A stretch of DNA of 63,849 bases, filler included, from Choristocarpus tenellus KU-1152 (GCA_964200185.2; 10 parts of 10 records of this genome joined end to end with filler, not necessarily neighbours in it); one strand, 5' to 3'; shown: positions 23,305-34,684, numbered from the whole stretch's first letter. Numbers and translations: made by a program. Notes: generated by a model from the sequence alone, not told the origin.

Positions 23305-23430
23305 CTGAGCCTTCAACAACCCAGCTAAGTCGGCGTTGTAGATGGCCACATCAGGGTGACTTGGCCCAAATATTTTCTGTCCAATGTCAATTGCCCTACG
23401 GTACAAGTCCTCGGCCTCTTCATATTCCCC
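23305..23430 (-). CDS. TPR exon 15 (GEYEEAEDLYRRAIDIGQKIFGPSHPDVAIYNADLAGLLKAQ)
   Basis: 126 bp, AG/GT bounded. Confidence 0.9.
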
Positions 23431-26400
23431 CTGCGCAACAAAAACCCAGAAAGGAATAAATAAATCAGGCACCCACGTATCACCACTTCATCAACCTAAC
23501 ATATCGCCGGGCCTTTCATTCTCAGCCCCACACAAGAGCGCCTAACAATCACCTTTGAGATCTCAACTGCTTGTAGACACAATTGGACCAACCACCTAAA
23601 CATTTCCTAAATTCCTAAATTCCTAAACCTACTCACACAGGACTTTGTCCTGCTAAAGCAACCATAATAAACCGTAACATCACTGCCCCAACAACACATG
23701 GACACAGGACACATTCCTGCAAGACAGGCAGGGCAAAATCTCACCTGGGCCTCCAACAACCCACCCAAGATGTCAAGGTCTGCAGCAAGAACAGGATGGC
23801 ATTTTCCCAGGGCAATCTCGTCAATGGCAACAGCCCTTCGGTAGAGAGACTCAGCCTCATCATACTTGCCCTGAATTGTTCAAAGCACAGAGTGGGCAGA
23901 TAAGTTACTGCCCAAGAAGGGGCCGTTTTCTTGTAGAACACACTCAACAAGACCCTGTTGAAGCTTCTGTGTCCGTCTTCGAGAAGTAAGGTCCCACCCA
24001 CGTTCAACTCCAATACCTCTACCGTTGCACACACAAGTGGGGAGTCGCCTAGTATCTGTGGTGTACTCTCTAAAAACGGAAGATCGTTCTGATATTTCAG
24101 AACCTGGAAAAAACACGTTCTCAACCACTTACAATGTCCAAGCCATGTTGCACAACCATGGCACCACTGCAGCCTTCATTTTTGTTTATTATCTTACCTG
24201 GGTAATCAGCAACCCAGCAAAGTTCGCGATACATGTGGCTAGATTAGGGTGGTCTGATGCAAGGACCACCTCACAGATGGTAATGGCCCTATGGTACAGA
24301 GGCTCAGCCTCGTCGTACCTACCCTGCATGATCAAAGCGAGTAATGGGAAAGATTAAAACAGTCAATCGTCTATTGAGGTAAAAATCCACAGTACCACAG
24401 CGCCATACTGGAATCCCATCCTCATACGTAGGCAGGGAGGCCTCACTGTTGACTTGTCTTGGCAGAATTGCATCGATCAGTTCAAATGTGTAAATATAAA
24501 AACTAACACTTAGTATCAGTCTATTTGATCATAACGTCCACACAAAGTTTTTGAAAAATTGGATTGATCAGGACATGATAAAACTCTGAATGACTTCTGA
24601 TGTATATACACCACATGTCACTCTAATCAAAAAGTCATAAAGCCTCAAACAACTCTGGACACTTGAGACACTGCTGGGTCTGAAACGCACGCACACATCC
24701 CATATCGTCCTAGAACATCAATCTTCTCACCTGAGCCTTAAGCAATCCAGCAAAGTTCACGAGACTTGTAGCAAGATCCGGGTGGTCCAATCCCAGGGCC
24801 ATCTCACAGATGGCAATTCCCCTACGATACATCCGCTCAGCCTCATCATAATTACCCTGCACAACAAAGAAACAAGGGAAAAAAAAATAATGTCTGGCAA
24901 TGGATTTGTCCTCAAACACACTCAACACATAGATCTTGTCCTAAAACTCTTGGCAAAGCAGGGTTCACGATAGGCTTCAAGGTCACCACCATTATACCAT
25001 ACAGCAGACCTGTCTCCGATGATGTGTTCCCCTTGTAGATCAAGTTTTCGCCTTGCAACAGAATCCTCACGCACAGCTCGCAATAAAAAATGGTTTCCAA
25101 TTTAAGAACCGATAACACAATATCTAACCATTATTTGGGTTGAAGGCTTAGGGCAAGGCAAGGCAAGGCAAATAGACCAACTGTCCTCACCTGAGCCTTC
25201 AGCAACCCTGCAAAATTAACCAGGTATATGGCAAGGTCGGGGTGGCCTGATCCCAGGGCAATCTCATCAACAGCAATTGCCCTGCGGTACAGAGGCTCAG
25301 CCTTGTCGTACTCTCCCTGAATGACCAAGGCCGTAAGAGGGAACAAACGAGTTCAGCAAGGGTAATAGACCCTCAAAATGTCATCCTCAACAAGCTGAAG
25401 TAACTTTAGAACATCGTTGGATCTTCACCATGTTCTTGACGCAGCAGGTCACACAGTCAGTACCATCCTCTCAATTGCTTCTATGGACAAGGGGTCTGCC
25501 TCTAAGTTCATTTACCCTATGCAATCCAATGTTGTTCTTCTCCAGTATATCATTACAGACAGCTCTCCACAAAATGGTCAACCCTACAACACATAGTCAC
25601 AGTAGCACATATCCCTACAAAACTCTACTGACTAACCTGGGCCTCAAGCAAAGAAGCAAAATCGATCAGGTCTGTAGCAAGGTCCGGGTGGTGTAATCCC
25701 AGGGCAACCTCATCAATCGCAATAGCCCTGCGAAACAAGGGCTCAGCCTTGTCAAATTTACCCTGTGCGATCAAAACCGGAAGAGACGAAAAGAAGGATC
25801 AAGCAACACAACAATCTTCAGTTACTCAGCACAACATCAATGTTTTGAATCACAATTCACAGTATTCGGTAGACAAGCAGATCAAACAATCAGATCCAAA
25901 TTACCATGTCTATATACAATTAATGGGCCAGTCCCCATATGTAATTACTCCTGGCAACCCAAGGTCTTGTCCTGAAGCCAGGGTTCCTCAAACACGAACT
26001 TCCAGCAGCCTATTGAACGTTCTTGAGCTCGCAACAAATAGCCAAAACATCTTTCCCTTCCAATGGTCACAGTCTCACCTGGGTAATCAGCAACCCAGCA
26101 AACTTCACAAGATGCATGGCCAGATCAGGGTGACTTGATCCTAGGGTGCTCTCATCAATGTCAATCACTCTGCAATACAGGGCCTCTGCCTCATCATACT
26201 TGCCCTGCATGCTCAAAAAATACACATGGAACAAACAAAAAGAATATAATCCACCAAAGAAAACAAAAATGCAACACAACTGATCAGAACAACAAACCAC
26301 ATTTATTGCCCCTCTACTGCAAGCAAAAGGCGGTTCCTAAATTTGACTCCAAAATCTTGACTGATCCTACATAAATACAGTCAGTGGTCCAGGCTTCAAA

Positions 26401-34000: not shown

Positions 34001-34684
34001 CATCCCCACCAGCACGTAAGGTCTCGCTGCCATGGACAAGGTTGCAACAACTTCTCCCTCCAACGAAACTCGCTGGATGTGAATTGAGGGTAGCACAGGT
34101 GTTCCCAAGGGTATATCGGCCACATCTGGTAACAAGGTAGGGAGAGGACGAAGTTCACGTATGGATAGGGAACCAACAGCTGCGACCACTGACAATATGC
34201 GCTCAAGGCTCTCCTCGTGTTCATAGATGACTCTCCGATCGCGGGCAGGAAGAAGAAGTCGGAGGACTCTGCGGACCGCTTTTTTTCGCTTTTTTTGGCC
34301 AACTTTACATGCAAGCTCTGCCACAGCCTCCATTTCGTCGCTTAGATCTTCCAGCGCAAGTATGACACTGTCGGGTAAGAGATGATCATGCGGGCAGCTC
34401 AAGACAAACGCCGTCACCATGACACCGTAACGCAAGAGTCCAATCAAGTCATCCCGTGCCCCAGCAGCAGCCTGCACGGCCTCGTACATCCCCTTGAAGG
34501 CAAGGCACACCGACTTCAAGCAACTCAAACTATTTACCTCGACAGCATCAACAACAGCTCCAGCTAAAACGTCCACATCACTGATCTCCTTCACTCGTGA
34601 TGCACCATTCCCAAACGCTGCATACCATGGCTGTTCACTATCAAGAAGATCTTTCAGATCTTCCAAGTCTTGGTAGTAAATTTC
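23305..34684 (-). CDS. NLR-like NB-ARC + TPR-array protein; at least 18 exons, about 1238 aa in the exons mapped; true 5' and 3' ends uncertain
   Basis: Exons 33521-34684, 33106-33399 and 32566-32931 followed by 15 x 126-bp TPR exons. All junctions are phase 0 with GT-AG, and the mapped exons have no internal stops. Confidence 0.9.
23745..23870 (-). CDS. TPR exon 14 (GKYDEAESLYRRAVAIDEIALGKCHPVLAADLDILGGLLEAQ)
   Basis: 126 bp, AG/GT bounded; hand-translated. Confidence 0.9.
24198..24323 (-). CDS. TPR exon 13 (GRYDEAEPLYHRAITICEVVLASDHPNLATCIANFAGLLITQ)
   Basis: 126 bp, donor gtaag; hand-translated. Confidence 0.9.
24731..24856 (-). CDS. TPR exon 12 (GNYDEAERMYRRGIAICEMALGLDHPDLATSLVNFAGLLKAQ)
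   Basis: 126 bp, AG/GT bounded. Confidence 0.9.
25191..25316 (-). CDS. TPR exon 11 (GEYDKAEPLYRRAIAVDEIALGSGHPDLAIYLVNFAGLLKAQ)
   Basis: 126 bp, AG/GT bounded. Confidence 0.9.
25637..25762 (-). CDS. TPR exon 10 (GKFDKAEPLFRRAIAIDEVALGLHHPDLATDLIDFASLLEAQ)
   Basis: 126 bp, donor gttagt; hand-translated. Confidence 0.9.
26079..26204 (-). CDS. TPR exon 9 (GKYDEAEALYCRVIDIDESTLGSSHPDLAMHLVKFAGLLITQ)
   Basis: 126 bp, AG/GT bounded. Confidence 0.9.
26583..26708 (-). CDS. TPR exon 8 (GKNNEAEPLYCRAVPIDGIALGSGHPDRATHFMSLAGLLIVQ)
   Basis: 126 bp, AG/GT bounded. Confidence 0.88.
27046..27171 (-). CDS. TPR exon 7 (GKYNEAEHLYRRAIIVDERNMGSDHPEVATDLTNFAGPLEMQ)
   Basis: 126 bp, weaker donor gtgtga; hand-translated. 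Confidence 0.88.
27430..27555 (-). CDS. TPR exon 6 (GKYAEAEPLYHSAIAIDEIALGSGYPDLVRDLSNFAALLEAQ)
   Basis: 126 bp, tag acceptor, gtgag donor; hand-translated. Confidence 0.9.
27887..28012 (-). CDS. TPR exon 5 (GKYVEAESLYRRAVAVDKVVLGSGHPDLATHLMNFARVLNIQ)
   Basis: 126 bp, AG/GT bounded. Confidence 0.9.
28351..28476 (-). CDS. TPR exon 4 (GRYDEAETLYRKAIAIDEIALGENHPDLATDLANFAGLLEAQ)
   Basis: 126 bp, AG/GT bounded; hand-translated. Confidence 0.9.
28751..28876 (-). CDS. TPR exon 3 (GNLVEAENLYQRAISIDKIALGSDHPDLATHIVKYAALLKVQ)
   Basis: 126 bp, AG/GT bounded. Confidence 0.9.
29211..29336 (-). CDS. TPR exon 2 (GKYDEAEPLYRRATAVGEKTLGSKHPHVATILVNFAGLQKAQ)
   Basis: 126 bp, AG/GT bounded; hand-translated, not in the ORF track. 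Confidence 0.9.
30067..30192 (-). CDS. TPR exon 1 (GKHGEAESLYRWAIAIDEVSLGPCLPDLAVDLHVFAGLLEVQ)
   Basis: 126 bp, cag|G...Q|gtgag. Confidence 0.9.
32566..32931 (-). CDS. NLR exon: winged-helix end with MHD-type motif and first half-TPR
   Basis: YRIHDMVLDF (MHD motif); ends WREVGDFLGLQ|gtgag; 366 bp, phase 0. Confidence 0.88.
33106..33399 (-). CDS. NLR exon: NB-ARC HD1/WHD region
   Basis: VARDCGFLPLALAIVGS (GLPL motif) ... EMLEQLWDT; 294 bp, AG/GT bounded, phase 0. Confidence 0.9.
33521..34684 (-). CDS. NLR exon: helical N-terminal domain + NB-ARC core
   Basis: P-loop GMGGVGKT, FQDGIFWL (APAF-1-like), Walker B CLVVLDDVWE, LLITTR. Donor ctgcag|gtgcga. The acceptor cacacag|gaa at 34684 is tentative. 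Confidence 0.9.

Follow-up and report, generated by a model that had tools for sequence, protein, structure and literature searches.

An expressed NB-ARC-TPR gene of Choristocarpus tenellus with an array of old one-repeat exons

Does a long row of interchangeable repeat exons behind an NB-ARC domain generate receptor diversity, or does it record how the gene was built? We addressed this question at a locus on the minus strand of contig C301, a 22-kb piece (positions 17172-39259) of a 63,849-nt stretch of joined sequence from the brown alga Choristocarpus tenellus KU-1152 (GCA_964200185.2; assembly of 164 Mb in 27,310 contigs). This whole stretch is called the window, and its positions are used throughout. 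A reading made from the sequence alone had described an NLR-like immune receptor at 23305-34684, consisting of an NB-ARC domain followed by 15 exons of 126 bp that each encode a different TPR unit, and had proposed that combinatorial splicing, DNA-level cassette exchange or both make it a candidate generator of diversity. Our analysis makes it likely that the locus is an intact, expressed brown-algal NB-ARC-TPR gene of the STAND class, and that the array is a fossil of ancient tandem exon duplication, with no active cassette exchange at the locus.

The best protein-search match was CAM9160206.1 (P0011 below), an unnamed Choristocarpus tenellus product of 1275 amino acids, at 99% identity. Mapping P0011 onto the window gave 20 exons, from 34848 to 22835, and 19 introns. 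Exon lengths are 54, 1164, 294, 366, 15 times 126, and 60 bp; as every length is divisible by three, all 19 introns are in phase 0. The translation of our own list of 20 exons equals P0011 exactly (local equality check), and the terminal exon, which was predicted from the sequence before P0011 was known, equals the C terminus of P0011. Database searches used single exons or P0011, never a spliced model joined by us. The gene extends beyond the span first reported at both ends, to an ATG exon at 34848-34795 and a stop codon at 22837-22835. Exons that had been thought missed by the open reading frame (ORF) track are all present in the public gene model. The window was also compared with contigs from three sequencing runs. 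X1 and X2 are DNA runs, and X3, which is not recorded as an RNA run, was treated as RNA on the basis of its GT..AG joints and its pattern of exon and intron depth; neither DNA run shows the splice joints of X3. The parts of the gene are listed below in gene order. Each TPR exon was found by both the exon scan and the DNA profile described in the next paragraph, with further evidence given in brackets.

34795-34848, minus strand: exon 1, ATG and 18 codons (MASSGG...SCQ), donor GTTGAA (maps to P0011 residues 1-18)
33521-34684, minus strand: exon 2 (1164 bp), N-terminal all-helical domain of about 230 amino acids, then the NB-ARC P-loop GMGGVGKT and Walker B LDDVW (Pfam NB-ARC E 8e-17 on the ORF)
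33106-33399, minus strand: exon 3 (294 bp), NB-ARC helical subdomain with GFLPLAL (GLPL) (Pfam NB-ARC profile positions 182-246; X3 contig)
32566-32931, minus strand: exon 4 (366 bp), winged-helix part, IHD (MHD-like) motif, linker and first TPR helix A (..GDFLGLQ) (X3 RNA contigs)
30193-32565, minus strand: intron 4 (2373 bp plus a gap of no set size), with an N gap, a 38-G run and multi-copy repeats
30067-30192, minus strand: TPR exon 1, phase 0-0 (X3 contig splices it to TPR exon 2)
29211-29336, minus strand: TPR exon 2 (X3 RNA contig)
28751-28876, minus strand: TPR exon 3 (X3 RNA contig)
28351-28476, minus strand: TPR exon 4 (X3 RNA contig)
27887-28012, minus strand: TPR exon 5 (X3 RNA contig)
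27430-27555, minus strand: TPR exon 6 (X3 RNA contig)
27046-27171, minus strand: TPR exon 7 (X3 RNA contig)
26583-26708, minus strand: TPR exon 8 (126-nt loose end of the X3 contig carries its first residues, GKNNEAEPLY)
26079-26204, minus strand: TPR exon 9 (P0011 mapping)
25637-25762, minus strand: TPR exon 10, donor GTTAGT (P0011 mapping)
25191-25316, minus strand: TPR exon 11 (P0011 mapping)
24731-24856, minus strand: TPR exon 12 (P0011 mapping)
24198-24323, minus strand: TPR exon 13 (P0011 mapping)
23745-23870, minus strand: TPR exon 14 (P0011 mapping)
23305-23430, minus strand: TPR exon 15 (P0011 mapping; placed beside exons of other contigs in the exon tree below)
22835-22894, minus strand: terminal exon, 19 codons (EKKKSF...QGMK) at 22894-22838 and TAG at 22837-22835 (sequence; P0011 C terminus)

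To define the array, we scanned for AG, 126 open bases and GT, which gave 15 open exons on the minus strand, each 126 bp long, AG/GT-flanked and in phase 0. A DNA profile of these exons (nhmmer) recovered exactly the same 15 from both strands of the 22-kb piece, and it found no decayed, truncated or opposite-strand TPR exon on either strand of this contig. The exons share the peptide pattern G-K-Y-D-E-A-E-x-L-Y-R-R-A-I-A-I-D-E-x-A-L-G-x-x-H-P-D-L-A-T-x-L-x-N-F-A-G-L-L-x-A-Q, and no two peptides are identical: pairwise identity is 56-79% in DNA (mean 68%) and 43-74% in protein. Tandem Repeats Finder did not detect the array because its units are too diverged. On P0011, Pfam matched TPR_12 (E 1e-120), TPR_10 (3e-113) and TPR_NPHP3 (8e-96), with TPR_12 and TPR_10 spanning residues 627-1256. 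The scan and the profile thus confirm the 15 distinct phase-0, GT-AG-flanked TPR exons of the sequence-only reading, 15 being a lower bound given the gap in intron 4. We also built an AF2 model of residues 585-1275 from a single sequence; it has moderate confidence (pLDDT 69) and was used for helix boundaries only. Helix pairs recur in it with a 42-residue period, and the exon junctions fall in 3-residue turns between helix A and helix B. As modelled, each TPR exon supplies helix B of one TPR, the loop and then helix A of the repeat that follows; adding or removing an exon would therefore leave frame and fold intact.

How the array is spliced can be read from X3. A 1010-nt contig with a depth of 40 is built of 126-nt blocks, in which six joints link TPR exons 7-6-5-4-3-2-1; these joints read CT..AC on the plus strand, which is GT..AG on the gene strand. 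The first 126 nt of this contig, before 27045, are the start of TPR exon 8. A 2022-nt contig (record 18) runs from exon 4 into a loose end at 32932 that reads the last codons of exon 3. These spliced contigs show that the gene is transcribed and that one molecule carries at least eight cassette exons, joined strictly in their genomic order. No exon-skipping joint was found among the best 15 of the 32 joints in X3 contigs. In Dscam1, mutually exclusive splicing chooses one exon from each cluster. Our array has in common with this arthropod gene a tandem series of homologous exons of equal length, which could in principle diversify a recognition surface, but the presence of eight array exons in one X3 RNA contig rules out a Dscam-like mutually exclusive choice or a docking-selector scheme.

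A looser form of splicing control, in which different subsets of cassettes are skipped, constitutively or on challenge, to give many isoforms of the TPR surface, has more in its favour, and we nevertheless consider it quite unlikely. Whichever subset of exons were included, frame and TPR register would both be preserved. In Ectocarpus ROCO genes, repeat exons are reported to be alternatively spliced (Teng 2024, PMC11378527), and the title of Teng et al. 2023 (Plant J 114:246), together with its citation in PMC11378527 and PMC12879055, indicates that a combination of exon shuffling and alternative splicing has already been proposed to diversify the NB-ARC-TPR proteins of brown algae. The X3 contig ends at or within about 2 nt of the exon boundaries at TPR exons 1 and 8, perhaps because the assembly graph branches there. 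On the other side, the sole spliced contig of the array holds its eight exons in strict genomic order at a depth of 40, with no skip among the joints just described; the splice sites are uniformly strong, with GTGAGA donors in 9 of the 15 TPR exons and a pyrimidine tract and AG at every acceptor, a pattern typical of constitutive exons; and every exon is under purifying selection. Minor, low-level exon-skipping isoforms may nevertheless exist, since contigs lose rare variants.

A short motif, GGRAWRT, also recurs within the array: the introns that follow TPR exons 1, 6, 10, 12 and 14 (5 of 15) each carry it between +22 and +30, counted from the donor, compared with the 0.4 cases expected under uniform placement. 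Looser versions (..GGGAAtGTGCT..) were seen by eye in other introns and at paralogous loci, and Ectocarpus TPR introns have a different conserved 5′ block (ttctagaag...ttctagatg). The motif may be residual homology or an intronic splicing element; if it regulates splicing, it would count in favour of combinatorial use of the exons.

The age of the cassettes was estimated from their divergence. Identity among the TPR exons at the three codon positions is 0.72, 0.77 and 0.54, and the pooled Nei-Gojobori estimates for the 15 exons are 1.08 for synonymous divergence (dS), which is near saturation, 0.30 for nonsynonymous divergence (dN) and 0.28 for dN/dS. The most variable columns of the repeat are 8, 24, 33, 31 and 19. 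Intron identity falls to background (approximately 0.28) within about 40 nt of the exons, and BLAST of intron against intron found no match between any two introns, so the unit of duplication can be followed for no more than about 40 nt away from an exon. Among the 15 exons, whose highest DNA identity is 79%, there is no trace of recent duplication or conversion. The high dS, the dN/dS of 0.28 and the unalignable introns show that the cassettes are old duplicates, each under purifying selection. A pseudogene was considered and is ruled out by the open spliced frame of 1275 codons, the transcription and the dN/dS of 0.28.

We then compared the array with those found elsewhere in the same genome, where at least 12 other contigs carry TPR exons of the AG, 126-bp, GT form and at least three NB-ARC loci were detected (C301, C11065 and C1147). 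The arrays on C3537, C187, C1147 and C7134 consist of near-identical TPR exons, some with stop codons, which marks them as young arrays in birth and death. On the minus strand of C3537 (L035), six near-identical 126-bp TPR exons recur roughly every 390 bp (about 4969-7053, counted on the reverse complement); in-frame stops interrupt two of them, and in one the donor reads AT, not GT. Genome-wide searches found no NB-ARC on this contig, which looks like a case of recent exon amplification followed by decay. Another contig, C9305 (L037), has TPR_12-type repeats back to back with no introns between them, so the same genome also has TPR genes without the one-repeat-per-exon layout. We placed 46 exons in a maximum-likelihood tree, on which the locus labels are clustered, with 15 changes compared with 29.6 for shuffled labels. 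The exons of our locus, 15 in all, make up an unresolved group whose terminal branches are long. TPR exon 15 has exons of C3537, C187 and C19753 as its sisters (support 99/93), and an approximately unbiased (AU) test did not reject a single clade of all 15 (p 0.20). A per-exon phylogeny with paralogous loci had been proposed as a check on shuffling; the tree obtained lends no support to cross-locus shuffling at our locus.

These results bear on the idea of cassette exchange at the DNA level, in which exons are copied, swapped or converted from one position or paralogous locus to another, either somatically or, at a high rate, in the germ line. For Ectocarpus, Zambounis et al. 2012 (PMC3341825) described 24 NB-ARC-TPR genes, 13 of which have 42-amino-acid TPR exons, and proposed exon shuffling and even somatic recombination, an adaptive-immunity hypothesis. 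For our locus, we give such exchange only the slightest chance. The near-identical arrays on C3537, C187, C1147 and C7134, with their stops, do speak of recent exon birth and death elsewhere in the family, and the grouping of TPR exon 15 with exons of other contigs would fit an exchange. At the locus itself, however, no two exons are more than 79% identical in DNA, dS is about 1.1 and the introns cannot be aligned; the 22-kb contig, in contrast to Ectocarpus locus L052, has no decayed, truncated or opposite-strand TPR exons; the exons cluster by locus, and a single clade is compatible with the AU test; and over 27000-30895 the window is colinear with the DNA contigs of two samples, which are bulk DNA and probably come from a single strain. 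A somatically assembled receptor, of the lamprey VLR or V(D)J type, would have an incomplete germ-line gene beside non-coding donor cassettes and DNA rearranged between cells; here the germ-line gene is complete and open, the 22-kb contig has no extra cassettes on either strand and the DNA contigs are colinear, although colinearity in bulk DNA from probably one strain is a weak test. The proposal of an active diversity generator is therefore unsupported by the serial splicing of TPR exons 1-8, the age of the exons and the lack of relics.

To place the gene in a family, we examined its NB-ARC domain and its exon layout. Pfam matched NB-ARC to residues 242-470 of P0011 (E 1e-24), and GMGGVGKT (P-loop), LDDVW (Walker B), GFLPLAL (GLPL) and IHD (MHD-type) are present in that order, as first described. 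Among solved structures, Apaf-1 comes closest to the NB-ARC part (E 1.4e-19, covering about 300 residues), with AfsR second and plant NLRs next. The motif order and the significant match assign the protein to the NB-ARC (Apaf-1/R-protein) class of STAND NTPases. Its nearest named relatives, 36-41% identical to it, are annotated as NB-ARC(+TPR) and come from Scytosiphon promiscuus, Ectocarpus fasciculatus and Ectocarpus sp. 8; no close orthologue was found outside Choristocarpus tenellus, the next best protein being at most 43% identical. Like the Ectocarpus NB-ARC-TPR genes, the locus has NB-ARC followed by TPRs, with one 126-bp, 42-amino-acid exon per repeat. A direct check of two E. fasciculatus loci (L051 and L052) showed exons of identical form (AG, G..42 amino acids..Q, GT) with the same phase-0 Q/G boundary. 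This domain fusion, the 42-amino-acid phase-0 exons, the intron position shared with Ectocarpus and the brown-algal nearest relatives identify a member of the brown-algal NB-ARC-TPR repetitive-exon family and bear out the Ectocarpus precedent that had been claimed for it; the placement was made by sequence matches and exon layout. E. fasciculatus L052 has decayed exons in its introns, whereas the Choristocarpus array has none, and two other hallmarks of shuffling in Ectocarpus, near-identical exons and a clustered paralogue on the contig, are also missing here. Such signs (inactivated intron exons, very similar exons) are a hallmark of many members and not a requirement of membership. The family also differs in size, with at least three NB-ARC loci in the Choristocarpus genome compared with 24 in Ectocarpus. 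NB-ARC-TPR orthogroups are among the families that expanded during brown-algal diversification (Denoeud et al., bioRxiv 10.1101/2024.02.19.579948). Since the architecture and the idea of a diversifying mechanism are already published, the locus is an unnamed additional member of this family and not a new kind of system.

Three other groups of proteins resemble the product in part. Brown-algal LRR-ROCO GTPases (Zambounis 2012; PMC11378527) likewise devote one symmetric exon to each repeat; they have been proposed as pathogen receptors, and splice variants that differ in repeat content are reported for them. Their exons, however, are 72-bp, phase-2 LRR exons on a Roc-COR GTPase, and intact exons occur on the non-coding strand, where our locus has none. 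Bacterial and fungal TPR-STANDs (AfsR/MalT-type; fungal NB-ARC-TPR NLRs) share NB-ARC and TPR_10/TPR_12-type repeats, but their repeats are encoded contiguously, and fungal diversity comes from recombination of highly similar repeats, whereas those described here are about 68% identical. Apaf-1, CED-4 and plant NLR switches share the NB-ARC motifs and the plan of an N-terminal signalling domain, an NB-ARC and a C-terminal repeat sensor; their sensors are WD40 or LRR repeats, and here they are TPRs.

We also examined the N-terminal domain (P0011 residues 1-235; window about 33980-34848, minus strand). AF2 folds residues 1-245 into a bundle made up entirely of helices (pLDDT 75). For this region of about 230 amino acids, Pfam gave no match on P0011, Foldseek against PDB returned nothing at E <= 0.001 and there was no significant match to CARD, TIR or CC. 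Pfam MLKL_N matched 2 of 30 homologues (best E 0.007) but not P0011 itself. VIA-align gave Z 7.8 against the MLKL N-terminal domain, a score tied with those of many helical bundles, and Atlas features of residues 1-235 reached at most 0.81 for the SesA, MLKL_N and Goodbye clusters, which is below a meaningful level. These hints of a death domain of MLKL, HeLo, SesA or Goodbye type, such as NLR-like proteins of fungi and animals have, are mutually consistent, none is significant, and we treat them as weak leads.

On the reading of the locus as an intact NB-ARC-TPR gene, the mature protein would carry a continuous solenoid of approximately 15.5 TPRs that may serve as both the sensor and the autoinhibitory arm of a nucleotide-driven switch. 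A ligand bound to the TPR arm could release the NB-ARC and allow nucleotide exchange and oligomerization, as in Apaf-1, plant NLRs and bacterial TPR-STANDs, and oligomerization would bring the N-terminal helical domains together to produce a signal, possibly cell death. The one-repeat-per-exon layout would have arisen by ancient tandem exon duplication, harmless owing to the phase-0 symmetry, and would have been present early in brown-algal history. It is conceivable, but in our estimate very unlikely, that the symmetric array is kept for regulated exon skipping, perhaps on challenge, which would couple a repertoire of TPR sensors to an MLKL/HeLo-like N-terminal executioner. If this were true, it would amount to a brown-algal resistosome with splice-generated specificity, already in place at the base of the brown algae.

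Alternatively, the same molecule may be a housekeeping or developmental STAND/TPR scaffold, comparable to nephrocystin-3, kinesin-light-chain-type TPR proteins or transcription regulators of the TPR-STAND group such as AfsR, and not a pathogen receptor. The array is old, stable and under purifying selection, with no traces of birth and death at the locus; the NB-ARC loci detected in the genome, at least three, fall well short of an expanded set of receptors; the repeats are matched by TPR_NPHP3, the nephrocystin-3 model; and AfsR ranks second among the solved relatives of the NB-ARC part. We find this account unlikely: that the next best protein outside the species is no more than 43% identical would be unusual for a housekeeping gene, genes and exons turn over within the family both in this genome and in Ectocarpus, and the N-terminal leads, weak as they are, point to death domains of MLKL or HeLo type. 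Ten brown-algal species are reported to share a conserved cell-death response to the oomycete Eurychasma dicksonii, and C. tenellus is listed among the strains of that study (PMC12396294); this supplies a biological setting but no link to this gene.

The assembly has a weak place inside intron 4. An N gap at 30940-30949 lies between exon 4 (which ends at 32566) and TPR exon 1 (which starts at 30192), 748 nt upstream of the acceptor of TPR exon 1; being intronic, it interrupts no reading frame. Logan contigs of the two DNA runs halt at 30895 and resume at 31071, and none bridges this interval. DNA word depth at 30800-30999 is 735 and 487 in the two runs, compared with 18.7 and 5.8 nearby. Within the assembly, the left flank of the gap has no match other than itself. 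Beyond the gap, a stretch of 38 G spans 31023-31060, and multi-copy repeats occupy approximately 31288-32271, with a word depth of 345 at 32200-32399 compared with about 18 elsewhere.

Several points weigh against our interpretation. P0011 was predicted from the same contig and so gives no independent support to the gene model. The gap could conceal one or more further 126-bp exons, since it is unbridged and the junction of exon 4 with TPR exon 1 is outside the joints listed, which makes 15 a lower bound. The RNA evidence covers TPR exons 1-8 and the exon 3-exon 4 junction only; the exon 4-TPR exon 1 junction, TPR exons 9-15 and the terminal exon are outside its coverage. It consists of contigs, which drop rare isoforms, and of the best 15 of 32 joints. 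X3 also has intronic signal, with a depth of 13 over 29335-29801 and of 20 over 32066-32594, so some transcripts are unspliced or end in intron 4; the second of these signals, at approximately half the exon depth, could come from transcripts that retain the intron or end early, or from expression of the repeats. A pooled dN/dS from 15 short sequences with dS near saturation is blind to a few positively selected sites. Finally, an immune or cell-death role of the gene product is suggested by analogy with its relatives.

Other features of the contig were noted around the gene. Upstream of it, at 38896-39162 on the minus strand, lies a copia-type reverse transcriptase fragment (Pfam RVT_2, E 3e-7, just under the gathering score). 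A 32-bp tandem repeat in 5 copies is found at 17538-17698, a run of 34 C at 35959-35992, and several (TG)n and (CT)n microsatellites within 17379-19831. At the intronic position 29152, the window has C and both DNA runs have T, which is either a single-base assembly error or a strain difference.

Choristocarpus tenellus belongs to the earliest-diverging order of brown algae. If this placement is right, the one-repeat-per-exon NB-ARC-TPR design, now placed in this species, probably predates the brown-algal radiation. The locus is a counter-example to the picture of shuffling drawn from Ectocarpus, because its long array is intact, diverged and under purifying selection, and the exons covered by RNA are spliced serially. 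As such, it offers a clean baseline against which to judge the idea, published but unproven, that splicing or recombination diversifies these genes.

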